From the NCBI GenBank assembly GCA_964057225.1, contig OZ059894.1, positions 16,802,001-16,866,000 of the forward strand: 64,000 nucleotides of DNA, in the 5' to 3' direction. Shown here one piece after another: positions 2,485 through 34,948 of this stretch. The position numbers and the translations under genes are program-made. This DNA is from Auanema rhodensis. Its lineage: Eukaryota; Animalia; Nematoda. Each line of letters starts with the position of its first letter. Position 1 is the first letter of the stretch. Below the pieces are notes generated by a model, which was given only the letters and a program-made list of their open reading frames with translations, was not told the DNA's origin and made no database searches.

Positions 2485-3152
2485 ATGCCTAGGTATGTTG
2501 TGCTGATATCTGGTAAGAGAAAGTCGGGGAAGGACTTTTGCTCGAAGATACTATCTGATGCCCTTGGTTGTAGTTATAAATGTGCTGTCATTGGGGTATC
2601 TCACAGTTTGAAAGAAGAGTATGCCATGAAACATGGTTTGTTCTCCTAAAGAAATGCTTTGTTATGAAAGTTACAGGACTGAAATACGAAGAGTTGTTAA
2701 CTGATAGTTTATACAAAGAAGAACACAGAGCTAAGATGATTATTTGGGGTGAAGCCAAGAGAAATTCTGATCCTGGCTATTTTTGCAGGTATAGCAGTAC
2801 TATTCCTAACTGTTGTAAATTCAAAGAAAAAACACACAGGGCTGCACTTAGTTCCGCAAAAAACGCTGTTATTGCTGTTATATCGGACTGTCGAAGAAAA
2901 TCTGACATGGAAGTTTTTAAATCATTGTTTTCTGATAGAAATGTTACTACAGTTCGAATAGAAGCTAGGGAAGAGACACGTATGAAGCGTGGCTATAAAT
3001 TTGTTGATGGTGTGGATAATACTGAATCAGAATGTGGATTGGACGATTATAAATTTGACTATATTATTAAGAATGATGAATGTGTTGAGGATGTTTCAGC
3101 AGTTCTCCAAGAGCTAGCGACCACAATAATAGGAAAACTTAATGAAAATTAA
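2485..3152 (+). CDS. PMVK: Phosphomevalonate kinase, animal type (3 exons)
   Basis: P-loop ISGKRKSGKDF from ATG 2485; YKEEHRAKMIIWGEAKRNSDPGYFCR, ISDCRRKSD and GVDNTESECGLDD match animal PMVK. Introns ~2636-2676 and 2789-2839. Confidence 0.95.
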
Positions 3153-3335: not shown

Positions 3336-5698
3336 ATGGCTGAGCTTGACGCTATTTTCAAGTACGTTTTAATTATTCTTTAACATAAAAGAATAAACTT
3401 GTAGGGATATTGATAATGCATATCCTCAATATCGAGATGTTTTGGCTGAGGCTGTAGCCATTGAAAGTGTATCTTCTGACCCAGCTCGCCGTCCTGATAC
3501 CGTTCGTATGTGTCATTGGATGAAGTGAGAAAACTTCTTCATTTATTTTAATTTTTTTACCTGTTTTGGTTTTCAAGTTTAGTTTTTTAATTGTTATAGA
3601 GAGCGTCTTGAGAAACTCGGTGTTGAAGTTGCTCTTCAAGATATTGGCAACCAAGTACTTGAAGGAACATCGGTAAAATAGATTTCAAGCAGTATTTTTG
3701 CTACGATTTGCTTGTAGGTTCCCCTACCTCCTGTAATTTTCGGAACTCTTGGAAAAGATAAAAGCAAAAAAACTCTTTTAGTATATGGTCATATCGGTTA
3801 GTTTTATCACTTGTGTGTTTTAAAAGCTACTAGTAGCATCCTTAAGAATTCATATTTTGAATTTATATATATATCAGAAATTTTCATAGTTTGATAAGAA
3901 TACCTATGCTCAGCTAAAACTTACTTTGTTATCTTTCTTATGCACACTGTTTATAGTTGTATTTCAGATGTACAGCCTGCTCAGAAGGAGGACGGGTGGA
4001 AGACTGAGCCTTTTGTTCTCACAGAAAGAGGTTTGAATGAATTTTACTAAGTTTTTATAATATAATATGAAAATTAACCGATTTTTTATTTATTTAAATA
4101 AGATATATTATCAATGCTTTAGCCTCTCCAACAATTGACTCAAAAATTTGAATGCAAGTTATAGTTAGAGAAACCAACACATAACTTTAGATGGTAAACT
4201 TTACGGAAGAGGATCTTCTGATGACAAAGGACCTGTATTGTGCTGGCTTCATGCCATTGCCATGATGCAAAAACATAATATCGACATCCCTGTTAATATT
4301 AAGTTTTGCTTTGAAGCTATGGAAGAAAGTGGTTCCGAAGGGCTTGAAGTATCTCTTTATTCATTTATACATTACACCTAGATTTGTTAAGGATCTTCTC
4401 ATCAGAGTTAAGGATACATTTTTGGCTGATGTTGACTTTTGTTGTATATCTGATAGTTACTGGCTTGGTAACACAAAGCCTTGTTTGACCTATGGTTTAA
4501 GGCTAGTTTGAAGTCCAGTCCGGTATGCTTACAGTTATATTTTAGAGGAATTTGTTCTTTTGGTGTTGAAATCACCGGTATCAATCAAGATCTTCACTCA
4601 GGTGTTTATGGTGGAGTAATGTAAGTAATGAAGCATAATTCAATTGAAACTGACCGAATTCTAATGAATTTAGTCATGAACCAATGTCTGATCTAGTTTG
4701 GATTCTCTCCCAACTTGTTACACACGATAACAGGATCCAAATCCCAGGTAGGTCACCTATTCGTTGGTCTTCTGACTATTTTATTTGTATTAGGAATTTA
4801 TAACGATGTTGCACCTATGACCACAAGTGAAACTTCTTTATACAGAGACATTGATTTCAGTGTCGAAGAATTCAAAAACAGTGTTGGAGCTAAGAAGCTT
4901 CCAGTCGAAGATAAAGAAACAGTCCTTATTAGAAGATGGCGAGAGCCTTGGTATAAATAAAAGGCTACAAATACTAAGAATTTAAATTAATTTCAGTCTA
5001 TCTATTCACGGAGTAGAAGGTGCCTTCTCCGGAAAAGGGGAAAAAACTGTAATTCCATCTAAAGTAATTGGAAAGTTCTCAATCAGAATTGTGCCCAACA
5101 TGAAACCAGAACAAGTAACCAAGTTGACAATTGATTACTTAAATAAGGTTTGGGCTACACGTGGATCTCCCAATACTTTCAAGTAATTTTAAAAAATATT
5201 AAATCTACTTTAAAATTTTGTTCAGGCCTGTCGGTCATCAAGGATTCTTACCATGGGTTGCTTCAACTACTGACCCTAACTATGTTGCGGGAGCACGCGC
5301 AATGCAAACAGGTAAATTACGGATATCACTTAATTAATATAATTTGTTTTTATATTTATCTGCTTTCATGTATTTTGATTTTTAGTTCATGGCGTTGATC
5401 CTGATTTGATCCGAGAGGGTTGCAGCATACCTATAACCTTAACTTTCCAGGTTAGTAAGTTAAATAATCAAGAATTATATAAAAATAATATAGTCTTCAA
5501 CCAAATAAAATGTAAAATTGTAATGTAATGCTATTTGACTTTGCAATTTAGGAACTCACCGGCAAAAATGTACTTCTATTGCCATTGGGTGCTTCTGATG
5601 ACATGGCTCACTCTCAAAATGAAAAGAATAATATAATTAACTACGTTCAGGGAGTAAAAACGCTTTTGGCATATATTCTCGAATTGGGAAAGGTTTAG
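3336..5698 (+). CDS. CNDP2: Cytosolic non-specific dipeptidase (peptidase M20A, CNDP2/pes-9 type), multi-exon
   Basis: Spliced motifs [66 protein letters not shown]; stop TAG 5696-5698. Confidence 0.95.
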
Positions 5699-5931
5699 AA
5701 TGTTGTTGATCGTACAAGATCATAGCGATGTGATATTGCTCGATAGTTGTATTTGTGTATTCTTATCTATTAAACAGTATATGATAACATTTGTTTTTTG
5801 AAGAACAAGAATAATGCCGAGAGTAACATTGTTATTGTGAATTTGATCTACAAGGCTTATCATTATGAAGAATATTTACTGATTCTCATCCATATAAAAA
5901 GTTGAAAAAATTGAAATTATTAGCTGTCATC

Positions 5932-6786
5932 ATGGTTCGACCAATTTTGATATGCTCTGTTCTCTTTCTCATGCTTTGCATATATGCAAGCGATGCTCAA
6001 AAAGTATTGAAGTTCTACAAAGGCTTGAAGAAAAAAATATTAAAGGTATGTTTAGAAGCGCCTTCACAGGCCAACATTTCTATTATAGGAGCACAATAAG
6101 CTTCGATCGAAATTTGCTAAAGGAAAGTTTACTGATGGCCAAGGTAACAAATTCCCTAAGGCTAAGGATATGATCAGACTTGTATGAAAACATAGCATAT
6201 AATATTTTATTTTATTAAATATTCAATCAGGTTTGGAATAAGAAAATGGCCAAAACAGCTGAAAAGGCTGCAAAGGCCTGCAAGATGGGTCCTCCAATCA
6301 ACAATAACTTGGGAGAAAGCCAGTTCACCGCCTTCTCTAACAGTACTATCGCCGATCCCGAAAATTTGGTATACAACTGAGCAAAGCTGATTGCAGTTCC
6401 ATTATGCTTATTTAGGCTTTGGATGCTGTTAAGGCATGGCTTAAGGAATTCGATCAGGGATGGAACCCTAATCTTTTAACCAAATCTGAAATTGGACATG
6501 CTATCCAAGTCTGAGCCTAAAATGAAGTCAAAAACTTAATATGCCATTTAGGCTGTATGGGGAAGAACTCGTAAAATCGGATGTGCTATTGTATCCTGTG
6601 ATGGTGGAAAAGGAGTTATGGTTGTCTGCGAATATGCACCAAAGTAAGTTGTCATCTGAGATCTGGCATATAATTGGCCATTATAGGGGTAATATGGCAA
6701 ACAAAAAGGCTTACAAACCTGGAAAAACCTGCCAAGCTTGTCCGAAACGCTTCAAATGCAACAAGAAGAAAGGACTATGCGGATAA
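5932..6786 (+). CDS. CAP/SCP/TAPS (venom-allergen-like) secreted protein 1; single domain, very Lys-rich, 6 exons
   Basis: Signal peptide MVRPILICSVLFLMLCIYASDA; EHNKLRSKFAKG, VWNKKMA, LGES, IGHAIQ|AVWGRTRKIGCA, VVCEYAPKGN, C-terminal CQACPKRFKCNKKKGLCG*. TATA-like TATAAAA at ~5893. Confidence 0.93.
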
Positions 6787-8011
6787 ATGATTTCTTTTAT
6801 GCGTATATGTGTATCTATACTTGTGTCTGTATTTACGGAAATATCGAACTCAATAAACTTTACATTCGCAATTAATGTGTATAATTCATAAAGAAAAACA
6901 GAAGCACCTTTTCTTATCAGTCTTTTTTTCTCAAAACGGAAGAACAATTTTGTATGACGTAATGTTACAGAGATTATAATTATTATTTACATATAAAAAC
7001 ATTATCATAATGATCGAAACCATATGAATTATAATAGTTTAATAACATTTCATATGAAGTAAGCGTTGATTTCATAAAATTTGTGCTTTTTTAATCTCAT
7101 AATAATATTATCTTTGAATCAGATTAATAACTGAAAATATTTGTTATATCAAGTTTTAAGTTGGGAAAGATTATGTATAAACTGATATGATTATTTTTTA
7201 TTAAGATTACTAGTTAGTTGTAGATCAAATCAAAAAACAGATTATTTTTGTTTATTAATTGTTTTTCTTAAATTATTAGAAAACAGCATTTATTTATGAA
7301 GATAACAAAATTTTTCAGATACAACAAATGATGCAAACTTCCATAAACTAATATTGATATATAATTATATGATAACACTGAAATGAACATTGAATATATG
7401 AATTAACAGTATTTTTTATGTTCACGTTTTCTTGAGAAAAATCATAAAAAAAAACCTCATTTATAAATTTGAAAAAAAACAATCGGTTGGTCATAATATT
7501 GCATCAGATCTTTTTAAGAATTCAACATTTTTCTGTATGGCGCCAATAGGTTTACTCAGTTTCAACTTGTTTAGCTGGAATTTATGATCTTGTTTTTATT
7601 ACAAAAAATAAGAAACTTTTTAAAATACGATGGATAGTAGAGATTGATATATAAAAATTTTCTAAGAGTACTATATATTAGTATTATGTTATGAAATGTT
7701 TATATTTACTACTATTTGATCATTGACTTCGTAAATGGGTGCAAATCTAAAAAAAACATTAAGTTGATAAAGCAGGACAATGTCTATAGCCTACAGTACA
7801 TAATTATAACGTTAGCTATTGAAATTCTAGTCTATGTGTGAGCTGATAATTTGACGTCGTTATGTTTTTTTTCCTAATCTAATATTGTATACAAATAGAT
7901 GCCTTCCTATTCATATGTTTGTTTAATGTAATATTCTTATCATACTAAGCTTATTTACCTACTTAGGTTTTTTTAAAGTGTCGGTTCTCATTTCCAAGCT
8001 CATTCGGTGCT

Positions 8012-8170
8012 ATGATGAGTCCGCGGCTGCTGCTGGCTATTTCGATAATAGGTATGATTTAGCTTTTGAATTATACGTTTTTTTCTTGAATTTCGAGAAA
8101 AAAAACCTTTTTTTCAGTCCTTCTTTTCCTATTACTGTTAATTATATATTTTTATATATAATAAATTGTG

Positions 8171-8201
<31 letters not shown>

Positions 8202-11200
8202 TATATATATATATATTATTTAATTAAATTAATATATAATATTAAATTTTATGTATTATTTTTGTTTAAAATTAAAACTCTTAATATTTAGCTGTCATCA
8301 GCGCTGATATAACCGGATCTGGTTCTGCACAGGATTTCTTAAATTGTAAGTCCTCCTAGTATAACTTTCTGTATTTCTTAAAATTCATGTTATAGATTTG
8401 CAATCTGCAAATAATGTGCAAGGTTATGCTTTACCAGATGGCGCTCTCATTCAGCCACAATTGTTACATAAGCTTCCCCCTGGATTCTCCGTCAGCTCTC
8501 GCCCTGTCGTAACTAAGATTCCGGGTGTCATGATGAGTATGACTAGCAACGCCGGTTATGGTCCTATAAATAACAACCAGATATCTAATGTAATATCTGG
8601 AATGCAATTGGACAATGGAGAAGTACCTTGCGAAAAAACTTTGTTCGCACTCAGAGAAGTAACAGGACTTGGAATGGCACAACTTGCTGCTGCCACAAAC
8701 CAGATTTTGGGTCAGCTTGCACTAGCTATCGGAAGTATAACTGGTCACACCAACAGTTTACCTCCTAGCACTACTGGGGATATCTCAGATTATGACCTGT
8801 CATTTTACTTAATGACTGGTACTTTACCAGGAAAACTCTATTCACCTGAATACACGTTGAATAATATCCTGATAACTTCTGATTCATCTCCTTTCTGGAA
8901 CCCCGTTGATGGATGGAACACCGAGCCTACTGATGAAACTCCTGATCATATTGATCTGGAAAACACATTCAGCTATTTCAATATTCCAAACTTCATACCT
9001 CACCAAATCGGATATCCTACATTGACACCAGTAGACTTAGGATACGAACCAACTAATCCCTCAACCAACCCTGGTAGTCCAGTGGTTTTCAAAATTACCA
9101 TTCCAGATTATCTAGCACCATTCTTCCCAAATGGCCAGATTCCTCCTCAGTTCCCTGTTTTCATGCAGACTCTGATTATAACCGTTCAGAAACATCACAT
9201 ATCACCAGAAACTATGCAGATTCCACCCGCTCTTATGATGTTTTTCCCGGGCAGAAATGTTCCTTTCGAAGTTATACAATTTGTATATCAAACGTTGGTC
9301 GAGCACACCTTGTATATTCGCTATATTCCTCTTGAGCTGGCTCAATATTTCCCTAACGGTCAATTCCCACAAACGTTCATCGATTTCATTTTGAAATTGA
9401 GCACTGGTGTCTCTATCCCACCTGAGGATGTTGTCCCAACCTTGGTTATTTTCTTCCCAAGCGGAACAGTCCCAGAGCCAGTGGTGAACTTTGTCATAAA
9501 CTTTATTTTCACTCACTCTTTACCGGAAACTGACGAGGAACAGGAAAACCTTCCAACAGATTCGTATCCAGAAACAATGTCTCCAGAAGAGATCTCAGTT
9601 CCTGAAGAATTGGCACCTTACTTCCCAGAAGAAGAAATTCCCGAAGAATTTATCGACTTCCTCAAGGATTTGGCACCCTATCTTGAACAACAAGGAAGCA
9701 TGCCAATAACATTCCAAATTCCTGAAAAATTAATGATTTTCTTCCCAACTGGTGAAATACCATTACCAATTTTAAATTTCATACAAAACTTCATCATTAC
9801 ATGGCATAAGCCAACAGACACACCACAGCCCATTGATGACTCCCCACTTCTGAAACCAACAGATGAAGAACCAGATGAGGAAACTGATGACGATCTCAGC
9901 GTAGAAAACGATGAAGAATTCCCAACTGATTCATACCCAGAAGGCACAAGTCCTGAAGAGATCACCGTACCTGAAGAGCTCGCCCCATACTTCCCACAAG
10001 GACAGATTCCACAGCTTTTCATCGACCTCTTGAAGGATCTTACCTTCACTCTTGATTCACCTGACACCAACAGATATACCGTCACTTTGCCGATTGAGTT
10101 CACATTCCTCTTCCCAGATGGCCAAATCCCAGAACCAGTTCAGAAGTTTATCGTGAACTTCATTCTCACTTGGCATCACCCAACCCACAAGCCAACAAGT
10201 CCCATGGATCCAACTGGAGAAGAGCCAGAGTATGGAGAACCAACATACGAAGACCCAACAGGAGAAGAGCCAGTGTATGGAGAACCAACAAACGAATACC
10301 CAACTGGAGAAGAGCCAGTGTATGGAGAACCAACAAACGAATACCCAACTGGAGAAGAACCTGTATATGGAGAACCAGACGAGGAAACTGATGACGATCT
10401 CAGCGTAGAAAACGATGAAGAATTCCCAACTGATTCATACCCAGAAGGCACAAGCCCTGAAGAGATCACCGTACCTGAAGAGCTCGCTCCATACTTCCCA
10501 CAAGGTGAGGTTCCAGAAGAATTTGTCGACATGTTAAAGGAACTTACTTTCACCCTTGATTCACCTGGCACCAACAGATTCACCATCCCACTGCCTATGG
10601 AGTTCACATTCCTCTTCCCTAATGGTCAAATCCCAGAACCAGTTCAGAAGTTTATCATGAACTTCATTCTCACTTGGCATCACCCAACACACAAGCCAAC
10701 AGGCCCCGTTGGTGATCACCCAACCCACAAGCCAGTAGGCCCCGTTGCTGATCACCCATTAGAATTCATTCCTGATGAGTATTCACCTGAGGATATCTCA
10801 GAATATGAAGCCACATACGAGGACCCAACAGGTGAAGAGCCAGTGTATGGAGAACCAACAAACGAATACCCAACAGGACAACCACTAGAGGATATAGAAC
10901 CAAAATACGATTTCCCAACAGGAGAAGAGCCAGTGTATGGAGAACCAACAAACGAATACCCAACTGGAGAAGAACCTGTGTATGGAGAACCAGACGAGGA
11001 AACTGATGACGATCTCAGCGTAGAAAACGATGAAGAATTCCCAACAGATTCATACCCAGAAGGCACAAGTCCTGAAGAGATCACCGTACCTGAAGAGCTC
11101 GCCCCATACTTCCCACAAGGACAGATTCCACAGCTTTTCATCGACCTCTTGAAGGATCTTACCTTCACTCTTGATTCACCTGACACCAACAGATATACCG

Positions 11201-14200
11201 TCACTTTGCCGATTGAGTTCACATTCCTCTTCCCAGATGGCCAAATCCCAGAACCAGTTCAGAACTTTATCGTGAACTTCATTCTCACTTGGCATCACCC
11301 AACACACAAGCCAACAAGTCCCATGGACCCAACTGGAGAAGAGCCAGAGTATGGAGAACCCACATACGAAGACCCAACAGGAGAAGAGCCAGTGTATGGA
11401 GAACCCACATATGAAGACCCAACAGGAGAAGAGCCAGTGTATGGAGAACCAACAAACGAATACCCAACTGGAGAAGAACCTGTATATGGAGAACCAGACG
11501 AGGAAACTGATGACGATCTCAGCGTAGAAAACGATGAAGAATTCCCAACTGATTCATACCCAGAAGGCACAAGTCCTGAAGAAATCACCGTACCTGAAGA
11601 GCTCGCCCCATACTTCCCACAAGGACAGATTCCACAGCTTTTCATCGACCTCTTGAAGGATCTTACCTTCACTCTTGATTCACCTGACACCAACAGATAT
11701 ACCGTCACTTTGCCGATTGAGTTCACATTCCTCTTCCCTGATGGTCAAATCCCAGAACCAGTTCAGAAGTTTATCGTGAACTTCATTCTCACTTGGCATC
11801 ACCCAACCCACAAGCCAACAGGACCCGTTGCTGATCACCCATTAGAATTCATTCCTGATGAGTATTCACCTGAGGATATCTCAGAATATGAAGCCACATA
11901 CGAGGACCCAACAGGAGAAGAGCCAGTGTATGGAGAACCAACAAACGAATACCCAACTGGAGAAGAGCCAGTGTATGGAGAACCAACAAACGAATACCCA
12001 ACTGGAGAAGAACCTGTATATGGAGAACCAGACGAGGAAACTGATGACGATCTCAGCGTAGAAAACGATGAAGAATTCCCAACTGATTCATACCCAGAAG
12101 GCACAAGTCCTGAAGAGATCACCGTACCTGAAGAGCTCGCCCCATACTTCCCACAAGGACAAATTCCACAGCTTTTCATCGACCTCTTGAAGGATCTTAC
12201 CTTCACTCTTGATTCACCTGACACCAACAGATATACCGTCACTTTGCCGATTGAGTTCACATTCCTCTTCCCAGATGGCCAAATCCCAGAACCAGTTCAA
12301 AACTTTATCGTGAACTTCATTCTCACTTGGCATCACCCAACACACAAGCCAACAAGTCCCATGGAGCCAACTGGAGAACAGCCAGAGTATGGAGAACCCA
12401 CATACGAAGACCCAACAGGAGAAGAGCCAGTGTATGGAGAACCAACAAACGAATACCCAACTGGAGAAGAACCTGTGTATGGAGAACCAGACGAGGAAAC
12501 TGATGACGATCTCAGCGTAGAAAACGATGAAGAATTCCCAACTGATTCATACCCAGAAGGCACAAGTCCTGAAGAGATCACCGTACCTGAAGAGCTCGCC
12601 CCATACTTCCCACAAGGACAAATTCCACAGCTTTTCATCGACCTCTTGAAGGATCTTACCTTCACTCTTGATTCACCTGACACCAACAGATATACCGTCA
12701 CTTTGCCGATTGAGTTCACATTCCTCTTCCCAGATGGCCAAATCCCAGAACCAGTTCAAAACTTTATCGTGAACTTCATTCTCACTTGGCATCACCCAAC
12801 ACACAAGCCAACAAGTCCCATGGAGCCAACTGGAGAACAGCCAGAGTATGGAGAACCCACATACGAAGACCCAACAGGAGAAGAGCCAGTGTATGGAGAA
12901 CCAACAAACGAATACCCAACTGGAGAAGAACCTGTATATGGAGAACCAGACGAGGAAACTGATGACGATCTCAGCGTAGAAAACGATGAAGAATTCCCAA
13001 CTGATTCATACCCAGAAGGCACAAGCCCTGAAGAAATCACCGTACCTGAAGAACTTGGAGAATCGTTCCCAGAAGGTGAGGTTCCAGAAGAATTTGTCGA
13101 CATGTTAAAGGAACTTACTTTCACCCTTGATTCACCTGGCACCAACAGATTCACCATCCCACTGCCTATGGAGTTCACATTCCTCTTCCCTAATGGTCAA
13201 ATCCCAGAACCAGTTCAGAAGTTTATCATGAACTTCATTCTCACTTGGCATCACCCAACACACAAGCCAACAGGCCCCGTTGGTGATCACCCAACCCACA
13301 AGCCAGTAGGCCCCGTTGCTGATCACCCATTAGAATTCATTCCTGATGAGTATTCACCTGAGGATATCTCAGAATATGAAGCCACATACGAGGACCCAAC
13401 AGGAGAAGAGCCAGTGTATGGAGAACCAACAAACGAATACCCAACAGGAGAAGAGCCAGTGTATGGAGAACCAACAAACGAATACCCAACTGGAGAAGAG
13501 CCAGTATATGGAGAACCAGAAGAGGAAACTGATGACGATCTCAGCGTAGAAAACGATGAAGAATTCCCAACTGATTCATACCCAGAAGGCACAAGCCCTG
13601 AAGAAATCACCGTACCTGAAGAACTTGGAGAATCGTTCCCAGAAGGTGAGGTTCCAGAAGAATTCGTCGACATGTTAAAGGAACTTACTTTCACCCTTGA
13701 TTCACCTGGCACTAACAGATTCACCATCCCATTGCCTATGGAGTTCACATTCCTCTTCCCTAACGGTCAAATCCCAGAACCAGTTCAGAAGTTTATTATG
13801 AACTTCATTCTCACTTGGCATCACCCAACCCATAAGCCAACAAGTCCCATGGACCCAACTGGAGAACAGCCAGAGTATGGAGAACCAACATACGAAGACC
13901 CAACAGGAGAAGAGCCAGTGTATGGAGAACCAACAAACGAATACCCAACTGGAGAAGAGCCAGTGTATGGAGAACCAACAAACGAATACCCAACTGGAGA
14001 AGAACCTGTATATGGAGAACCAGAAGAGGAAACTGATGACGATCTCAGTGTAGAAAACGATGAAGAATTCCCAACTGATTCATACCCAGAAGGCACAAGC
14101 CCTGAAGAAATCACCGTACCTGAAGAACTTGGAGAATCGTTCCCAGAAGGTGAGGTTCCAGAAGAGTTCGTCGACATGTTAAAGGAACTTACTTTCACCC

Positions 14201-17200
14201 TTGATTCACCTGGCACCAACAGATTCACCATCCCATTGCCTATGGAGTTCACATTCCTCTTCCCTAATGGTCAAATCCCAGAACCAGTTCAGAAGTTTAT
14301 CATGAACTTCATTCTCACTTGGCATCACCCAACCCACAAGCCAACAAGTCCCGTGGACCCAACTGGAGAACAGCCAGAGTATGGAGAACCCACATACGAA
14401 GACCCAACAGGAGAAGAGCCAGTGTATGGAGAACCAACAAACGAATACCCAACTGGAGAAGAACCTGTATATGGAGAACCAGACGAGGAAACTGATGACG
14501 ATCTCAGTGTAGAAAACGATGAAGAATTCCCAACTGATTCATACCCAGAAGGCACAAGCCCTGAAGAAATCACCGTACCTGAAGAACTTGGAGAATCGTT
14601 CCCAGAAGGTGAGGTTCCAGAAGAGTTCGTCGACATGTTAAAGGAACTTACTTTCACCCTTGATTCACCTGGCACCAACAGATTCACCATCCCATTGCCT
14701 ATGGAGTTCACATTCCTCTTCCCTAATGGTCAAATCCCAGAACCAGTTCAGAAGTTTATCATGAACTTCATTCTCACTTGGCATCACCCAACCCACAAGC
14801 CAACAAGTCCCGTGGACCCAACTGGAGAACAGCCAGAGTATGGAGAACCCACATACGAAGACCCAACAGGACAAGAACTAGAGGATATAGAACCAAAATT
14901 CGATTTCCCAACTGGAGAAGAACCTGTATATGGAGAACCAGACGAGGAAACTGATGACGATCTCAGTGTAGAAAACGATGAAGAATTCCCAACTGATTCA
15001 TACCCAGAAGGCACAAGCCCTGAAGAGATCACCGTACCTGAAGAACTTGGAGAATCGTTCCCAGAAGGTGAGGTTCCAGAAGAATTCGTCGACATGTTAA
15101 AGGAACTTACTTTCACCCTTGATTCACCTGACACCAACAGATTCACCATCCCATTGCCTATGGAGTTCACATTCCTCTTCCCTAATGGTCAAATCCCAGA
15201 ACCAGTTCAGAAGTTTATCATGAACTTCATTCTCACTTGGCATCACCCAACCCACAAGCCAACAAGTCCCGTGGACCCAACTGGAGAACAGCCAGAGTAT
15301 GGAGAACCAAACGAGGAGACTGATGACGATCTAAGCGTAGAAAACGATGATGAGGAAGAATTACCAAAAGATTCTTATCCTCTCAGTGTTACTCCAGACG
15401 AGATTACTGTTCCCGAAGAACTTGGAGAATCGTTCCCAGAAGGTGAGGTTCCAGAAGAATTCGTCGACATGTTAAAGGAACTTACTTTCACCCTTGATTC
15501 ACCTGACACCAACAGATTCACCATCCCATTGCCTATGGAGTTCACATTCCTCTTCCCTGGTGGTCAAATCCCAGAACCAGTTCAGAAGTTTATCATGAAC
15601 TTCATTCTCACTTGGCATCACCCAGAACAATCGTCTCATCCATCCAAGGAACCTGAGCAAAACAGTCCATTCTCCCCTAACATGTACCCCGAAGATATGA
15701 GTCCTGAAGAAATTACTGTTCCTGAAGAACTCACTCCTTACTTCCCACAAGGAGAAGTTCCAGATCAATTCATCATCATGTTGCAGAAGCTCACATTCAC
15801 TCTTGATTCGCCCACAACAGATCGTTTGAAGTTCCCATTCCCAATGGAATTCACAGTTCTCTTCCCCGGAGGAAAAATTCCGTTGCCAGTTCAACAGTTC
15901 ATCACAAACTTTGTTCTTACTTGGCATAAACCACATGAACCTTCTCATCCAGTTGATGAACCCGAAGAGGAATCGGATGACGATCTCAGTGTTATAAACC
16001 CTGATGAGGAAAATCCATTCCCTACTGACTCTTACCCTATCGGAATGACTCCTGATGAGATCACAGTACCTGAAGAGCTCGCCCCATACTTCCCACAAGG
16101 ACAAGTCCCAATTCAATTTATCATCATGTTGCAGAAGCTCACATTTACTCTTGATTCACCTACAACGGATCGGTTAAACTTCCCATTCCCAATAGAATTC
16201 AAGGTTCTCTTCCCCGCAGGAAAAATTCCAAAGCCAATTCAACAGTTCATCATCAACTTTGTTCTCACTTGGCACAAACCTACAACGACATCTCCAGTTT
16301 CTGATAAGCCTGGAACTTTATATCCATCGACTATGACTCCTGATCAAATAACAGTGCCAATAATGTTTGGACAGTTCTTCCCAGGTGGTCAGATTCCAGT
16401 ACAGTTCATCATAAGCGTGAAGAAATTAGCTCAAACGATTGATAGCCCATATACTGATCGTTTCAGCTACCCATTCCCATTCGAATTCACATCAATGTTC
16501 CCAGCTGGAAATATGCCTACTGAAATCAAACAGTTCCTTAAGATTTTCATTATGACTTGGCATAAGCCAGATAATCAGTTCCCAACTGATTCTTATCCCA
16601 CTAACATGTCACCAGATCAAATCACAGTCCCATCTGATCTTGCCAAGTACTTCCCAGAAGGCAAAATTCCACAGCAATTCATTGTCTACTTGCAACAACT
16701 GGCACCAACCCTTGATCAGCCATTCACCGATCGTTACAACATCCCATTCCCATTCCAATTCTCAGGATTGTTCCCTGGTGGTAAGGTACCAGACCAGGTT
16801 AAGAGCTTTATCTTAACTTTCATCATCACATGGCACAAGCCATTGCCATTAGTTCCATCTACCAACGATGAACCTACCACTACTTCTGAGGATTTATCTG
16901 ACATTAAGGTACCTGAAGAACTCGGACAGTACTTCATTGGTGGATCTATTCCAATTCAATTCATCATATTCTTGAAAACATTGACTAAGGAGATTTCCCC
17001 CGGACATATTCCACCTATTTCTATTCCTGTCGAAGTCGTTCAATTGTTCCCTAATAACAATATTCCTCCACAAGTAATCGAATTTATTCAAAACTTCTTG
17101 ATGACCTGGTTGAATCCAACCAACCCTACTACCAATGTTGTGTCAATCTCCGTACCTCCTGAGTTGGGAATATACTTCCCCGGAGGTACTGTGCCCATGG

Positions 17201-20200
17201 AATTTTTGGTTTTCCTTCAAGATATCGCACCATCAGGCGAACATCCAATTACTATTAACCCTGATGGCTCCTTCACTATGCCACAAGAAATCTACAAATT
17301 CTGGCCTAGTGGACTTGTTCCACAACCTGTTTTGGTCTTCTTGCAAACTGTTATACAGCAATGGCAAACCCAGTCTCAAAACGACCCTCAATCACCAGAT
17401 GCTATAAACATCCCTCCCGAGATAAGTCTTTATTTCCCAGGACGACAGATTCCTCAATCATTCTTAATTTTCCTTCAAAACTTAGCACCAGGTGGAAGCA
17501 ATCCAGCTACAATGAACCCTGACGGTTCCTTCACACTGCCTCAGGAGGTATTCCAATTCTTCCCTGGAGGCCAAGTTCCACAACCTGTAATGGACTTCAT
17601 CATGTCAATTCTGAAAAAATACGTCACCATGCAATCTGGTCCAGCACAGACAATCAGCATTCCAGGCAATCTTGGGTTATACTTCCCTGGAGGAGTAGTA
17701 CCACCAACATTCATGACATTCATACAGACTATTGCCCAGAAAAAACTTTTGAAGACAAATCCTGATGGAAGCATTATTCCTCCACCGGGAATCGAACAAT
17801 TCTTCCCTTCAGGAATAGTTCCACCACCAGTTCTTGCTGTTTTTGAGCAACTTCTTTCAAATCAGCCACCAAAGAAAACCGATACTCCTGGCACTATGAC
17901 CATTGAGTTCCCTCTTAGTTTAGGACAATTTTTCCCAGGTGGAGTGATTCCTGAAGATTTCAAGATCTTCATCTTATCACTTGGACCAAGTGGATCTAAT
18001 GAGCTCAAACCATCACCTGACGGATCATACGCAATCCCACAAGGAATTCTCACCTTCTTCCCAACTGGTGATATTCCAGCTCCAGTTATGCAATTTATTC
18101 AAACTTGTATATCCACCTTCAAGAACCCATCAAACACAAAAAACATGATCACTATTCAAATTCCCGCTTCTCTTGTTGCATATTTCCCAGGAAACGTTGT
18201 ACCACAAGCTTTCGTCACATATCTTCAGAACTTATCCCCACAAGGATCAAATCCATTGATTATTAGACCAGACGGATCTTGGTCATTACCTCCTGGGCTT
18301 AATGTTCTCTTCCCCGGATACATGGTACCACAACCTGTTATGGATTTCATCTCAAATCTTGTGATGCAATGGCAAACAGGAAAACCAACACCAGATTCAG
18401 ATATCATGAACTTTAAGGAATTCACCATTCCAGCGACTATTAACCACTATTTCCCTGAAGGAAAAGTTCCCCACAGCTTCATGATGTTCTTGCAAGGATT
18501 AGCACCAAACGGAAGCAACCCTGTAGAAATTCATCCAGATGGAACTATGACTATTCCGTCCCAGATTACATCATTCTTCCCAGGCGGAATATGTCCTCCT
18601 GAGGTTATAGAAGTTGTACAAAACTTTGTTCATTCATGGTATAAGAAACCAATACAGTCTTTTAACCCTGGACAGTTGCCGTTTTTTCCGTTAGGCGGAA
18701 CTGAGAGTCCGCCGAACCAAGTATCTCCTCCAGCTGACGGTACCGAAATCCCCACCATTAACACTCCAGAAGAACAACCAACTGATGATTCTGAAACTCT
18801 AGTGGAAGAGCCCGAAATACCTATTGACGGTTCCGAAACTCCAGTCGACGAAACAGAAGTACCAACTGATGATTCTGAGACTCTAATTGAAGAACCCGAA
18901 ATACCTATTGACGGTTCCGAAACTCCAGTCGACGAAACAGAAGTACCAACTGATGATTCTGAGACTCTAATTGAAGAACCCGAAATACCTATTGACGGTT
19001 CCGAAACTCCAGTCGAAGGATCAGAAGAACCAATTGATGATTCTGAGACTCTAGTAGAAGAGCCTGAAATACCTATTGATGGCACTGAGACTCCAGTCGA
19101 AGGATCTGAAGAAGATACTGAAGATTCTGAATATCCTGATGAAGAATACGAAGAACCTACTGAAGCTTCAGAAACTCCAATAGATGAATCCGAAGAACCA
19201 ACTGAAGATTCTGAAAACCCTGACGAGGAATACGAAGAACCAACTGATGATACCGAAACTCCAGAAGAAGAATCGGAAGAGTCAACTGGTAATGTAGAAA
19301 CGCCAGGATTTGTAGCAGCAGATACAAACAGTCACACTGGTCCACAAATGCCAGGAAACGATGATGATTATAATTATTATGAAGAGAACACCGGAACTGA
19401 GCCTTCAGACGAATCGCCTGGCGATGATGATGAAGAATCAGAGGAAAACACTGGAACATCGCCTGATGACGATGATGAAGAGTACGAAGAAAACACTGGA
19501 ACATCGCCTGATGACGATGATGAAGAGTACGAAGAAAACACCGGAGGATCGCCTGGCGATGATGATGAAGAATCAGAAGAAAACACTGGAACATCGCCTG
19601 ATGACGATGATGAAGAGTACGAAGAAAACACTGGAACATCGCCTGATGACGACGATGAAGAGTACGAAGAAAACACCGGAGGATCGCCTGATGACAATGA
19701 TGAGGAATCGGAAAATAACACCGGAACATCGCCTAATGACGATGTTGAAGAATCTGAACAGAATACTGGAACATCACCTAATAGTGATGATGGAGAGTAC
19801 GAATATCCTGAAGGAGATCCTAGCTACCCATATGAGGATACCTATGAGGAATATGATCCAGAATATGATGAAGAGAACACCGGTGGCGGAAAACCAGGAG
19901 GAAACCCAGGTGGACAAGGTGGAAGCCCTGGTGGAAATGGAGGAAACCTAGGTGGAAATCCTAATGGAAACCCAGGTGGACAAGGTGGAAGCCCTGGTGG
20001 AAATGGAGGAGACCTAGGCGGAAAACCTAATGGAAACCAAGGTGGACCAATTAAAGGAAATCCTGCTGGAACTGGTAACGGACTAACACCGGGTAACGGT
20101 GGAAATGGAGGTGGACTTGGAACCGGAACAGCAGGAGGCAATCCGTCTGGCATGGGTACTGGCACAGCAGGCAATCCGTCCGGCATGGGTACTGGCACAG

Positions 20201-21537
20201 CAGGAGGCAATCCGTCCGGCATGGGTACTGGCACAGCAGGCAATCCGTCCGGCATGGGTACTGGCACAGGAGGAGGCAATCCCTCCGGCATGGGTACTGG
20301 CACAGGTGGAGGAAGCCCATCCGGCTTTGGTACTGGCACAGGAGGAGGAAGCCCATCCGGATTTGGTACTGGCACAGGAGGAGGAAGCCCATCCGGCTTT
20401 GGTACTGCTACCGGAGGCGGCTCTGGATCAGGCTTTGGTACTGCTACCGGAGGCGGCTCTGGATCAGGCTTTGGTACTGCTACCGGAGGCGGCTCTGGAT
20501 CAGGCTTTACTACATCGACAGGTGGAGGTAGTGGAAGCAATATCGGTTTTGGAACAGGAGGAAACGGTGGAATCAGCTTTGGTACTGATTCCGGAGGAGG
20601 CAGTGGATCCAGTTTTGTTACTGACACCGGATCTGCAACAGGATCTAGTTGGGTCAGTAACACTGGCTCAAGTAGTGCCAATGAATGGAAAAAGAATGCT
20701 CGGCTAAATCCTGCTCAAATCCAACAAGTCATATCGGTACGTCAAAATTGAAAACTGGATTATAAACCAATCTTTAATTTAGGCTCACAATAAACCAAGA
20801 TCCCAAATTGCCAAGGGCTTATTCTTGGATGGAACAAACTCAACAATGCCATCTGCCGCTAACATGTTCCGAGTGGTAAACATTACATAGATTAAATCAG
20901 TATTTGATTGATATGAATTCTAGAATTGGGATGAGACACTTGCAAAGAGTGCTCAGCGTGCGTCCAACACTTGCTCACCTAAATCCATTAACTTCACCAC
21001 TGTTGGTGAAAATACTTATTATGTAAAATTGGACAGATTGATTAAGAATCCACAATTTCATGTATGTCTTAAAAATAGTTCTGGATAACTATATGAACTT
21101 TTAGGCTGTGAAAGCTGTTGAATCATGGTTCGATGAGTTAGCCAATAATCCATGGAACGAACAAAGTAGCATGGCTGGTATGCAAGAAGGTTTCCAAGTG
21201 AGTTTACTGATTTATGCAGAAATATTTTACTTAAAATCACCTTTCTAACTATATTTCTAATATAATGCTTAAGGTTGCTTGGGGCCGTACTCGTAAAGTT
21301 GGTTGCGGAGTTACAAACTGTGAAAGTGGTGTAGCGGTTTTGGTCACTTGTCACTATTTGCCAAAGTAAGATTTTTTTGAATTTTAATTATAGTTTTTTA
21401 ATATTATTTGATATTTTTTTAATAAAAATGCTTTCAGACCAAAAGACTTCGGACCAATCACTTATATACCTGGACAAATGTGCTCGCAATGTACAGGAAA
21501 TACTGTTTGTAATCCGAACACAGGACTATGCATATAA
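8012..21537 (+). CDS. Giant secreted repeat protein (~4,316 aa) with a C-terminal CAP/SCP domain, 8 exons
   Basis: Exons 8012-8051 and 8292-8345 (signal peptide MMSPRLLLAISIIAVISA), 8396-20736 (12,341 bp, open), then CAP exons 20783-20875, 20924-21061, 21105-21197, 21274-21365, 21438-21537: AHNKPRSQIAKG, NWDETLA, VGEN, VAWGRTRKVGCG, VTCHY, CSQCTGNTVCNPNTGLCI*. All junctions are GT-AG and in phase. Confidence 0.9.
8173..8215. repeat. (TAA)n(TA)n microsatellite in intron 1 of the giant CAP gene
   Basis: taataataataa...atatatatat read directly. Confidence 0.9.
9088..18651 (+). repeat. Coding array of 26 copies of a ~70-80 aa domain with twin P-x2-[LF]-x2-[YFL]FP-x-G-x-[IV]P motifs
   Basis: Counted in the translation. 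The 12 central copies (~9860-15620) are near-identical in DNA, with periods 459/504/534/570/615 bp; flanking copies are diverged. Confidence 0.9.
18778..19880 (+). repeat. Acidic coding repeats (PTDDSETLIEEPEIPIDGSETPVDETEV; ENTGTSPDDDDEEYE)
   Basis: 84-bp and 45-bp tandem units visible in DNA and protein. Confidence 0.9.
19882..20670 (+). repeat. Gly-rich coding repeats (GGNPGGQGGSPGG; GGNPSGMGTGT; GGGSPSGFGTGT; GGGSGSGFGTAT)
   Basis: 33-36 bp tandem units directly upstream of the CAP domain. Confidence 0.9.
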
Positions 21538-21887
21538 AAACTCACAATTTCTTCTCTATGTCTGTATATAATGTTTTGACAATACAAATTTATATAACAT
21601 TTTGTTTTTTATTTGAACAAAAGAAGGTCAAATTAAAAATGAAACATTTATATTATAAAACAGAACAACAAACATACAAAGATACATATACTTTTATAGT
21701 TATATGTATATTTGCTCACAATTTAAAAAATCAAATTTTTTATGAGTTTTGACGTCAAAAGCATATTTTTGTTTTTGTTGATATGAACTTTCCAAATAGT
21801 TGAAAAACTGATAACCTTGTTGATCTTTGAAATAATAAACTAGAAAAATGTATTTAAACTCTTCTGGAACCAGATGTAATTCATAAC

Positions 21888-23903
21888 ATGAAACTTGCTA
21901 CTATCTTTATTACATGGCTCGTAATAGGTAAGCTTATATCTCTTATTATATTTTCGATTACTATTACCTTTATTTCAGTTGATGTAGATGCGATTGCAAT
22001 TAATCGTAGGCGAAAACAGTCATTGAGACGGGAATGTAAGTACAATTTAGTTTATTTCCATTTAAACTTCTTTCAGTTCTGCTCTCTCAAAACAGTGGAA
22101 ATGCCTTCGGTGTGCTGCTGGAAAATGTCTCTAGACAATATGATGGATCCAAGTCCATTTTAACAGATTCCACTTGGTATGATGGTCGATCGATTGATTC
22201 CCGAGCTGCTCAGAAGAAAGGAGGAAATAAGCCCCAACAGAAACCAGCTCACAAGCCCGCACCCAAGCCAGCTCACAAGCCCGCACCCAAGCCAGCTCAG
22301 AAGCCAGCACATAAGCCAGCACAAAAGCCAGCACACAAACCAGCGAAAAAACCAGTAAAAAAGCCAGTGAAGAAACCAGCAAAAAAGCCAGTGAAGAAGC
22401 CAGGATCCAAGCCACAACCTTCAAAAAAACCTGGTAATAAACCGGCAAAAAAACCTGGTCAGAGACCGGGAAAGAGACATCGCAAGAGGCGTTGTCAAAG
22501 GCACAGAAGACCTGGCAAGAGACCTGGCAGAAGACGTTGTAGAAAGCGCCGAAAAAGGCCAGGCAAAAAACCCAAACCAAATAAGAAGAAGAAGCCAGGT
22601 AAGAAACCAAAACCTCACCAAAAAAAAAAGAAAAAGACCAAGCCTGGTTCTAAACCAAAACCAGAATCCAAACCCGAGTCTAAGCCCGATTCAGGTTCAA
22701 ATTCAAAGCCGGAGTCAAAGCCGGAGTCGACGCCTGATTCGAAGCCGGAGTCGAAGCCGGAGTCGAAGCCTGAGTCAAAGCCTGATTCTAAGCCTGAGTC
22801 GAAGCCGGAGTCAAAGCCTGATTCTAAGCCTGATTCTAAGCCTGAGTCTAAGCCAGAATCGAAGCCTGAGTCGAAGCCGGAGTCGAAGCCGGAGTCGAAG
22901 CCGGAGTCCAAACCAGAGTCGAAACCAGAGTCAAAGCCAGAGTCGAAACCTGATTCAAAGCCTGAGTCAAAGCCTGAGTCAAAGCCTGAGTCGAAGCCTG
23001 AGTCGAAGCCTGAGTCAAAGCCTGAGTCGAAGCCTGAGTCGAAGCCTGAGTCAAAGCCGGAAACAAACCCTGATTCTAATCCTGAAACTTCAGCAAAACC
23101 AAAACCTGGGGCTGTTAAGTTCAATCCGAAAGCAATTCAGGAGATTCTTGATGTAAACTGATTTTTTACACTTTTAGAAATTCTTCAATAAATGAAAATA
23201 TTCAGGAGCATAACGATTTACGTTCTCGTCTTGCTAAAGGAAGCTTTAAGGATGGCAACGGAGTTTCAAAGCCTGAAGGGAGTGATATGCTGAAATTGGT
23301 TCTTATCTTTTCGAGATATAACATACAAAATCAATTTAAGGAATGGGATCCCAAATTGGCCAATTCAGCTCAAGAAGTTACTGATACATGTGAATTCAAA
23401 CACTCTGGAAAACCAGATCTTGGTGAAAATTTACATACATATACATCGTCTAAAGGCATAACAGATCCTCAAGCAGGAGTAAGTTAAATTTACTGTTTAA
23501 CAACGTATTGATGTTATATTTAGGGTAAAAAGGCCGTTGCTAGTTGGAACAGCGAGTTTGATAAGTATGGCTGGTCAAGCATGAAGCTAGAAGATAAGAT
23601 TGGACATGCTACTCAAGTAAATCTCTAAATAGATTAACTCAAAATAACATTGAAATATTCTAATACAGGATGTATGGAGTACTACGAAACGTGTTGGATG
23701 CGCCATTACCATATGCGAAGAGGGAAAACGCGGTTTAGTTGCATGTCATTATCAACCGATGTTAGAAAAGTAATGAAAACCAATTAAATTGCAATTCTTT
23801 TAGGGGTAACTACAAAAATAGAGATGTTTATGAAGCTGGAGCAGTGTGTTCGGATTGTCCAAGTGGCACAACATGCGAACGCTCAACAGGATTATGCGTT
23901 TAA
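21888..23903 (+). CDS. CAP/SCP/TAPS secreted protein 3 with Lys/Arg/Pro-rich and KP(E/D)S-repeat N-terminal region, 8 exons
   Basis: Exons 21888-21927, 21979-22035, 22077-23152, then CAP exons: [40 protein letters not shown]|[39 protein letters not shown]. Confidence 0.92.
22229..23088 (+). repeat. 12-bp coding tandem repeats: [16 protein letters not shown], an Arg/Lys block, then ~30 KP(E/D)S
   Basis: AAGCC(T/G)GAGTC(G/A) units; translation of ORF 22112-23161. Confidence 0.92.
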
Positions 23904-34339: not shown

Positions 34340-34948
34340 ATGAAAAGAATAGTCGTTAAATCCATTTTGATTGTCCTATTATACGCAACATGCTCAAGTT
34401 GTGAAAAGGGTTAGTTTTATACTTTTTTCTAATATAGTTTGCTTCATCGGATCGCCTTTAAAAAATATTTTATAGATTCAACCAATGAAACGGAACCAAT
34501 CACTTCATTAAATGCAACATTAATCAGCCCCACTCCATCCAATACAACTTCTGATGACAATATTACAGCTAGTACAAATCCGACTTCAGAGTTAGCTAAA
34601 GAAATGGATGCTGATATTTCCAAAATAATGAGCAAAATGGAAGAAATGGTGGATATACTTGATGATTGGAAGAGTATTGAGCTTATGGCCCAATCTATTT
34701 TTGAAATAGATCCAACTCTGGCTGAACCAGATGAAGACAACGATATTCAAAACGAAGAATCTTCTGACTCTGATACACCTCATATACGTGAAAAAAGAGG
34801 GGGAAAATTTTTGAAAAAGGTAAAGAAAATATTCAAGAAGGCATTATCCTGCTACATTTCGAGAAAAAAGAGATCTATAGATCTCAAACCACGCAAAAGT
34901 CCTGTTTTCATAGACACATCTTTTCATAAAAAACCTCTTTCAAATTGA
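34340..34948 (+). CDS. Secreted prepropeptide: signal peptide, acidic pro-region, REKR-GGKFLKKVKKIFKKALSCYIS-RKKR, basic tail (candidate antimicrobial peptide precursor)
   Basis: Exon 34340-34409 (MKRIVVKSILIVLLYATCSSCEK, donor GTTAGT) splices in phase to 34476-34948; two R-x-K-R furin sites flank a 21-aa peptide with 7 Lys and no acidic residue. Confidence 0.8.

Follow-up and report, generated by a model that had tools for sequence, protein, structure and literature searches.

Three neighboring genes, all on the plus strand, occupy positions 5932-23903 of the window analyzed here, the 64,000-nt stretch C1:16,802,001-16,866,000 of the nematode Auanema rhodense (coordinates below are window positions unless prefixed C1 or C8). 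Each gene encodes a CAP domain at its 3′ end and a hydrophobic, signal-like N-terminus. The central subject is gene 2, in which a single exon encodes a large array of one repeated domain between these two parts. The models of the three genes were rebuilt by hand from the sequence; RNA confirms the five CAP introns of gene 2, and exons 1 and 2 of gene 2 and all introns of genes 1 and 3 are sequence-only models. Every intron has GT..AG splice sites, and intron lengths range from 41 to 76 nt, with a single exception of 240 nt.

5932-6786, plus strand: gene 1, a predicted secreted, Lys-rich CAP protein of 209 aa without insert; 6 exons (5932-6045, 6089-6181, 6231-6368, 6416-6508, 6552-6643, 6687-6786) of 114/93/138/93/92/100 nt
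8012-21537, plus strand: gene 2, 4,316 aa; 8 exons (8012-8051, 8292-8345, 8396-20736, 20783-20875, 20924-21061, 21105-21197, 21274-21365, 21438-21537) of 40/54/12,341/93/138/93/92/100 nt
21888-23903, plus strand: gene 3, 562 aa; 8 exons (21888-21927, 21979-22035, 22077-23152, 23206-23298, 23341-23478, 23524-23616, 23669-23760, 23804-23903) of 40/57/1,076/93/138/93/92/100 nt

The last five exons, which encode the CAP domain, are identical in size and phase across the three genes (93/138/93/92/100 nt), and their products align over 170 residues with zero gaps, at pairwise identities of 33%, 39%, and 36%. Genes 2 and 3 also share a 40-nt exon 1 ending in ..ATAG/GT (the slash marks the exon boundary) and a short exon 2, of 54 nt in gene 2 and 57 nt in gene 3, ending in T/GTAAG. 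Exon 3 measures 12,341 nt in gene 2 versus 1,076 nt in gene 3. A first-pass annotation had described the five common CAP intron positions, the two short 5′ exons, and both exon 3 lengths, and in the rebuilt models all of these are correct to the base. The divergence among the three genes does fall in the region between the signal peptide and the CAP domain.

The product of gene 2 can be divided into six successive parts.

8012-8345, plus strand: signal peptide, encoded by exon 1 (8012-8051) and exon 2 (8292-8345), MMSPRLLLAISII / AVISADITG.., with canonical splice sites
8398-9078, plus strand: unique N-terminal region of exon 3, 227 aa, isoelectric point (pI) 4.3
9079-18657, plus strand: tandem array of 26 "twin FPxG" modules, each about 82 aa long
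18658-19887, plus strand: acidic tail, 410 aa, 39.5% Asp/Glu, without Lys or Arg, with 42/84-nt and 45/135-nt repeats
19888-20736, plus strand: Gly-rich stretch, 283 aa, 41% Gly, whose 3′ end encodes the first CAP helix (NPAQIQQVIS)
20783-21537, plus strand: CAP exons of 93/138/93/92/100 nt, with both tetrad histidines replaced

Exon 3 of gene 2 encodes 4,113 aa in a reading frame that is open across 12.3 kb. Its product has a pI of 4.05 and a net charge of −671, and contains 15.6% Ser+Thr, 14.1% Pro, and 3 Cys. The N-terminal 227 aa returned no Pfam match and no usable match in the Atlas feature search, and the Gly-rich stretch is built of units of the form GTGT(A/G)GG(N/S)PSG(M/F). The linkers between modules span 0-128 aa; those of the central modules are 48-128 aa long, acidic and Tyr/Pro/Glu-rich, with PTGEEPVYGEPTNEY-type repeats, and those of the last seven modules, at the 3′ end, are 5-10 aa long. 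There are 145 Tyr residues in exon 3, 80 of which lie in acidic, base-free contexts, and these contexts, being of a kind typical of sulfation or cross-linking sites, may mark such modifications.

Each module consists of two half-units, both of which carry the motif (I/V)x(V/I)Pxx(L/F)xxxFPxGxxPxxFxxF. A search of the genome (180,911,798 bases) placed all 26 module matches inside exon 3 of gene 2 and none elsewhere. This genome encodes 94 nematode cuticle-collagen N-domains, whereas arthropod cuticle domains and pectate lyase were looked for and not found, and an insect (chironomid) or cyst-nematode origin was rejected on these results. An AlphaFold2 model of a single module, for which the alignment input was the paralogous repeats of gene 2, has a predicted local distance difference test score (pLDDT) of 87.5 and a predicted template modeling score (pTM) of 0.77, and shows four helices and a small hairpin. 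In a model of three modules every fold is kept, the linkers have pLDDT values below 50, and pTM is 0.36; the low linker confidence and low pTM indicate that the modules would behave as independent beads.

Relatives of the module were sought by sequence and by shape. A profile of 17 modules gave 0 matches among 1.84 billion protein representatives, and a word-indexed search of 5.8 billion clusters with exon 3 residues 2430-3430, which covered proteins of 2,262-7,198 aa only, gave no scoring match. The product of gene 2 itself is evidently missing from those protein libraries, so sister Auanema species may be missing too. Single modules had no match in Pfam, and six modules gave no usable match in the Atlas feature search. 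A hit of the whole exon to DUF7919 (37.6 bits) was rejected, as no single stretch passes and the score accumulates across near-identical repeats. Searches with the module model likewise returned no clear match, whether by Foldseek against the PDB (best E-value 1.4), in the wide search of VIA-align (best Z 4.5), or in the shape search of the ESM Atlas (template modeling score up to 0.43). This absence of a clear fold match is no proof of a new fold.

The modules record both constraint and recent amplification. The ratio of nonsynonymous to synonymous substitution rates (dN/dS) among them is 0.14-0.29, including old copies whose synonymous divergence (dS) exceeds 1. The central modules fall into two sub-types with 97-100% DNA identity within type and are arranged in 459-nt super-repeats; the flanking modules retain the motif and fold at 27-47% protein identity. 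From the low dN/dS and the near-identity of the central units it follows that the twin FPxG module is an old domain under constraint that has recently grown in copy number. The central super-repeats, together with the failure to find the domain in any other gene or organism searched, could be taken to mean that the array is a recent and largely neutral repeat expansion in a highly expressed CAP gene, without a function of its own. We regard this as highly improbable, given the divergence of flanking modules that still keep motif and fold, the low dN/dS even among the oldest copies, and a frame that has stayed open over such a length.

Transcription of gene 2 was examined in four runs (X1-X4) from one 2019 study, in which 64-73% of the sampled words of 15900-23903 are present. 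Contigs were placed on 20640-22228, a stretch picked to exclude long tandem repeats. They skip the gene 2 introns at 20736/20783, 20875/20924, 21061/21105, 21197/21274, and 21365/21438, that is, five of five as predicted. This exact skipping identifies the runs as RNA and shows that one mRNA, with its 3′ end around 21580-21591, joins the giant exon to the CAP exons. On unique exons of gene 2, the word depth is about 4,600-6,900 in X1-X3 and 85 in X4. By a rough estimate, which assumes that X1-X4 are the 2 x 100-nt libraries of PMC6469403 with its library sizes and that the mRNA measures 13 kb, gene 2 could supply about 1-3% of the sequenced bases in some libraries. Codon bias, considered as a proxy for expression, gave weak differences and was not used.

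A very abundant transcript that encodes small helical units in tandem, each with a confident predicted fold and joined by flexible linkers, recalls the nematode polyprotein ABA-1 of the NPA family. Gene 2 might accordingly be read as a precursor that is cut into about 26 helical units acting singly, for instance in carrying ligands, and whose CAP domain is left over as a by-product. NPA units, however, are parted by furin-type sites, and exon 3 of gene 2 contains no R-x-K/R-R site and just 6 dibasic pairs in its 4,113 aa. The wide range of linker lengths is unlike that of regular cleavage spacers, there is no sequence similarity to ABA-1/NPA, and neither the sequence nor the fold of the module matches known lipid-binding units. 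A polyprotein is thus very unlikely.

Assignment of the three genes to the CAP family was based on the profile PF00188, with its curated cut-off of 21.1 bits. In a six-frame search of the genome, gene 1 scored 22.1 bits and gene 3 scored 22.3 bits across exons, and the gene 1 exon at 6552-6641 scored 23.8 bits alone. Single exons of gene 2 scored 17.1, 20.5, and 17.8 bits, each under the cut-off and over it only when added, and the membership of gene 2 also rests on the 33-37% ungapped identity of its CAP domain to those of genes 1 and 3. A profile of the fourth CAP exon built from six paralogs retrieved 19 CAP structures from the PDB, led by Brugia VAL-1 (1e-9) and Na-ASP-1 (6e-9); the gene 2 exon 20924-21061 alone had no match in the PDB. 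In the block alignment, the motifs HN..R, GE(N/S), W..T...GC...C, and C.Y.P are found in all three genes. GH.TQ is found in genes 1 and 3 and is replaced by ..EGFQ in gene 2, and GN after the split codon, also present in genes 1 and 3, is PK in gene 2. The CAP exons of each gene encode 8 Cys.

The four residues provisionally assigned to the His/Glu/Glu/His tetrad, after the PR-1 P14a and CRISP structures rather than by superposition, are all kept in gene 3, whereas the alignment shows three of four in gene 1 (first His lost) and two of four in gene 2 (both His lost). The CAP tetrad serves in metal binding, and family membership does not need it. The general plan is that of the nematode SCP/TAPS proteins (VAL, ASP, SCL; PF00188), with a signal peptide and a CAP domain carrying HNxxR, GEN, GHxTQ, and CxYxP(x)GN motifs and conserved cysteines, and tandem gene clusters are usual among SCP/TAPS. 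To our knowledge, the described members are about 200-450 aa long, with one or two CAP domains. Genes 2 and 3 differ from SCP/TAPS proteins in carrying inserts between the signal peptide and the CAP domain, of 4,100 repetitive residues in gene 2 and 360 residues in gene 3, and gene 2 differs also in lacking the tetrad histidines.

The flanking genes 1 and 3 are basic. Gene 1 has no insert, and its exon 1 encodes both the signal peptide and the first CAP helix. As the first-pass annotation had stated, its CAP domain is Lys-rich: the CAP exons have a pI of 9.8 and a net charge of +19, and 34 Lys were found among the 208 residues of gene 1 counted. In gene 3, the region downstream of the signal peptide comprises the following parts.

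22259-22645, plus strand: polycationic block, 129 aa, 46.5% Lys/Arg, net charge +60
22646-23152, plus strand: zwitterionic KP(E/D)S array of 31 units, net charge 0, followed by the first CAP helix
23206-23903, plus strand: CAP exons, with the His/Glu/Glu/His tetrad complete

The basic block consists of (A/P)(H/Q/K)KP repeats with 12/24-nt periods and contains two Cys and four furin-like R-x-K/R-R sites. Exon 3 of gene 3 as a whole has a pI of 10.3 and a net charge of +64, so that the contrast drawn in the first-pass annotation between an acidic exon 3 in gene 2 and a Lys/Arg-rich one in gene 3 holds when pI and net charge are computed by region (net charge −671 versus +64). An 11-nt core, CACACAAGCCA, is common to the gene 2 linker repeat HPTHKPTGPV (36-nt unit) and the basic repeat of gene 3 (24-nt unit), and repeats bearing it lie at 10679-10758 and 13250-13329 in gene 2 and at 22229-22344 in gene 3. 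It could descend from a common spacer or reflect a coincidence of codon usage, and we give it little weight.

The opposite charges raise the question of whether the products act together. It was proposed in the first-pass annotation that they form a co-secreted polyanion/polycation assembly, in which the polyanion encoded by gene 2 would leave the same cells as the basic proteins of genes 3 and 1, and charge attraction would condense them into a coacervate-like gel, plug, or adhesive organized by the CAP domains. A precedent exists in coacervate adhesives such as sandcastle-worm cement, and the present locus resembles these in encoding together strongly and oppositely charged proteins that are, here, predicted to be secreted. 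The charges of the three products and their signal-like N-termini are consistent with such an assembly, as is a GATA-factor site at a similar distance (−75 to −79) in each promoter.

5857-5862, minus strand: GATA-factor site TGATAA of gene 1, 75 nt upstream of the ATG, with a second site at −150
7937-7942, minus strand: GATA-factor site of gene 2, 75 nt upstream of the ATG, with further sites at −168 and −247
21809-21814, plus strand: GATA-factor site of gene 3 (CTGATAAC), 79 nt upstream of the ATG

The proximal sites of genes 1 and 2 are embedded in an identical CTTATCAT word, and the three promoter stretches of 250 nt together contain six TGATAA sites, where 0.95 would be expected. The three of these that are not proximal lie at 5782, 7765, and 7844. 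A TATA-like box is found near −40 to −47 in each of the three genes. The CAP paralog at C1:15.065 Mb has no TGATAA site within 400 nt. In Caenorhabditis elegans, proximal GATA sites of this kind mark intestinal and some epidermal genes, and the shared sites suggest expression in the intestine or epidermis, as a lead rather than a finding. No promoter word other than the GATA sites is common to the three genes above chance, which speaks against such an assembly.

The RNA also bears on such an assembly. No contig of X1-X4 falls on 21594-22228, which includes the first two exons of gene 3 and the initial 150 nt of its exon 3, and the 5′ end of this gene (its first 340 nt, 21888-22228) is absent from all four libraries that contain gene 2, across gene 2 depths from 85 to about 6,900. 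Matched co-expression of genes 2 and 3 was not seen in X1-X4. The share of words of 15900-23903 present is 0.72-0.73 in X1-X3 and 0.64 in X4, and by arithmetic the exons of gene 2 can supply at most about 0.66. The surplus, some 500 words in X1-X3 but not in X4, has as its sole remaining location the rest of gene 3 (22229-23903), and since these words exceed the capacity of the gene 2 exons, low-level gene 3 RNA may be present in the libraries with high gene 2. Stoichiometry is unfavorable as well, because a charge balance of −671 to +64 would require about ten gene 3 molecules per gene 2 molecule, and within gene 3 the KPES half has a net charge of 0 and the basic block might be cleaved off at its four furin-like sites. 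In sandcastle-worm cement the charge carriers are phosphoserine and small Lys/His-rich proteins of one gland. We know of no such modification or gland for the present locus. Of the earlier proposal, the opposite charges stand; the assembly itself is unsupported, and we consider it unlikely.

The kinship of the three CAP domains was examined against the few further CAP loci detected in the genome. The same CAP subfamily with a ..GLC tail occurs as a single gene at C1:15,063,153-15,066,326 and as a tandem pair at C8:14,128,019-14,131,291, neither with a large insert. These are the nearest paralogs; the gene at C1:15.065 Mb shares three of the five intron positions and the pair at C8:14.13 Mb shares four, and since they are shared by genes elsewhere, most of the CAP intron positions appear to be family-wide and old. 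Both paralogous loci differ from genes 1-3 by indels in most alignment blocks. Peculiar to genes 1-3 are the intron directly before (E/A)HN, the indel-free alignment, and adjacency. No giant low-complexity exon was found beside the other CAP loci within the 3-29 kb examined around each. In a maximum-likelihood tree of seven CAP paralogs, based on concatenated block alignments, bootstrap values are 48-59 and the branching is not resolved; branch lengths of 0.6-1.3 substitutions per site indicate that the duplications are ancient.

It had further been suggested in the first-pass annotation that exon 3 is a freely evolving cassette. This does not fit the rebuilt genes. In genes 2 and 3, the start phase of exon 3 is 1 and its end phase is 0. 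The exon also contributes the first CAP helix (..NPAQIQQVIS in gene 2), which in gene 1 is encoded by exon 1; with unequal phases and part of the CAP domain inside, it cannot be moved as a unit. Nor are its repeats in gene 2 free, since their dN/dS points to constraint. In a simpler reading, the payloads arose by growth in place of the spacer between signal peptide and CAP domain through tandem amplification. The two shared phase-1 introns at the 5′ end, following the 40-nt exon 1 and the 54/57-nt exon 2, argue that genes 2 and 3 descend from one ancestor that already had this layout.

We favor, with a probability of about 0.55, an interpretation in which genes 1-3 are old tandem CAP paralogs and gene 2 encodes a bulk secreted polyanionic matrix protein with a binding or anchoring CAP end. 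It builds on the observed gene structures, the splicing of the gene 2 CAP exons, the high transcript level, the charge, and the uniqueness and constraint of the module. A single nematode SCP/TAPS gene of the CAP superfamily would have been duplicated in tandem long ago, giving three genes whose products each start with a signal peptide, continue with a stretch that varies among them, and close with one CAP domain that bears a Cys-rich ..GLC tail. Successive tandem amplifications would then have enlarged the variable stretch in place, within the exon encoding the first CAP helix. For gene 2 the outcome would have been a polyanion of 4,316 residues resembling beads on a string, with 26 four-helix domains joined by flexible acidic linkers rich in Tyr, Pro, and Thr. 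The product would be a secreted structural matrix protein, forming a hydrated gel, a coat, or a luminal layer, in which the folded beads and the Gly-rich part could provide cohesion and the acidic linkers could bind water and cations. Its CAP end would be a binding or anchoring module and not an enzyme, and genes 1 and 3 would encode separately dosed secreted paralogs rather than stoichiometric partners.

Several points weigh against this interpretation. Monophyly of genes 1-3 is neither supported nor rejected (approximately unbiased test, p = 0.16), and with the tree unresolved, their common local origin is argued from adjacency and from the intron and indel characters that they have in common. 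That the genes are paralogs with a common skeleton is supported by the exon sizes and the gap-free alignment. Contig word depth measures expression poorly, and X1-X4 are coded libraries that attach no label of sex or stage to high gene 2. The fold model of the module is built on the paralogous repeats of one gene only. The GATA sites are short motifs in AT-rich sequence. Finally, secretion and a matrix role of the gene 2 product, its tissue, and the role of its CAP end are inferred.

Precedents for a matrix protein of this kind are available from other systems. In yeast Pry3 and mammalian PI16, one CAP domain is found on a long extracellular stretch that is Ser/Thr/Pro-rich or acidic, and these proteins provide a precedent for surface or matrix proteins with a terminal CAP module. 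The stalk of Pry3 and PI16, however, is C-terminal to the CAP domain and is anchored by glycosylphosphatidylinositol, whereas the stretch in gene 2 is N-terminal and includes 26 folded domains, and an anchor signal was not seen in gene 2. A further comparison is with secreted matrix proteins that are giant and repetitive, namely the gel-forming mucins, the C. elegans plug mucin PLG-1, and the Balbiani-ring silk proteins of Chironomus. Gene 2 is like these in its one huge repetitive exon, its recently homogenized central repeats, and its Pro-rich charged sub-repeats, and their very high expression in secretory tissue is paralleled by the abundance of its transcript. Unlike the gel-forming mucins, gene 2 has no PTS, VWD, or cystine-knot/CTCK domain by Pfam, its Ser+Thr content is modest for comparison at the 15.6% given above, and its repeat is folded and helical. 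The CAP family itself, as nematode SCP/TAPS, is already known; new are the giant N-terminal array of an orphan domain with acidic and Gly-rich tracts before a histidine-less CAP domain, the level of expression, and the three-way contrast among the genes.

Other features of the window lie outside the CAP genes.

2580-3152, plus strand: exon of an animal-type phosphomevalonate kinase (PF04275, E = 1.8e-19)
34439-34948, plus strand: open reading frame with an acidic propiece, then REKR, then a basic amphipathic stretch
36410-36814, minus strand: low-complexity open reading frame with MNPNHAS heptad repeats
38324-41694, minus strand: four successive open frames of 193-342 aa, Ser/Thr/Pro-rich, without a Pfam match, probably exons of one large disordered protein
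50617-51318, minus strand: low-complexity open reading frame with 15 consecutive Pro and then a long Asp/Glu tract, without a Pfam match

CAP proteins count among the most abundant products that nematodes secrete, and what they do is largely unsettled. The present locus combines one CAP skeleton with three very different N-terminal parts. The gene 2 module has a confident predicted fold, is under purifying selection, has no relative among 1.84 billion proteins, and is confined to one exon, and it offers a case for the birth and amplification of a domain. A more far-reaching proposal is that gene 2 is the first of a new class of extracellular materials. This giant polyanion, composed of a domain that arose in the Auanema lineage, would be produced in large amounts by a single sex or stage, condensed or set by the neighboring basic CAP paralogs, and cross-linked through the CAP domains; examples would be a male plug or seminal material, or a dauer-linked coat, in this three-sexed nematode. 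We consider this quite unlikely. If the libraries with high gene 2 prove to represent one sex or dauer-fated larvae, gene 2 would be a ready marker of that morph and a candidate effector in a model of three-sexed reproduction.

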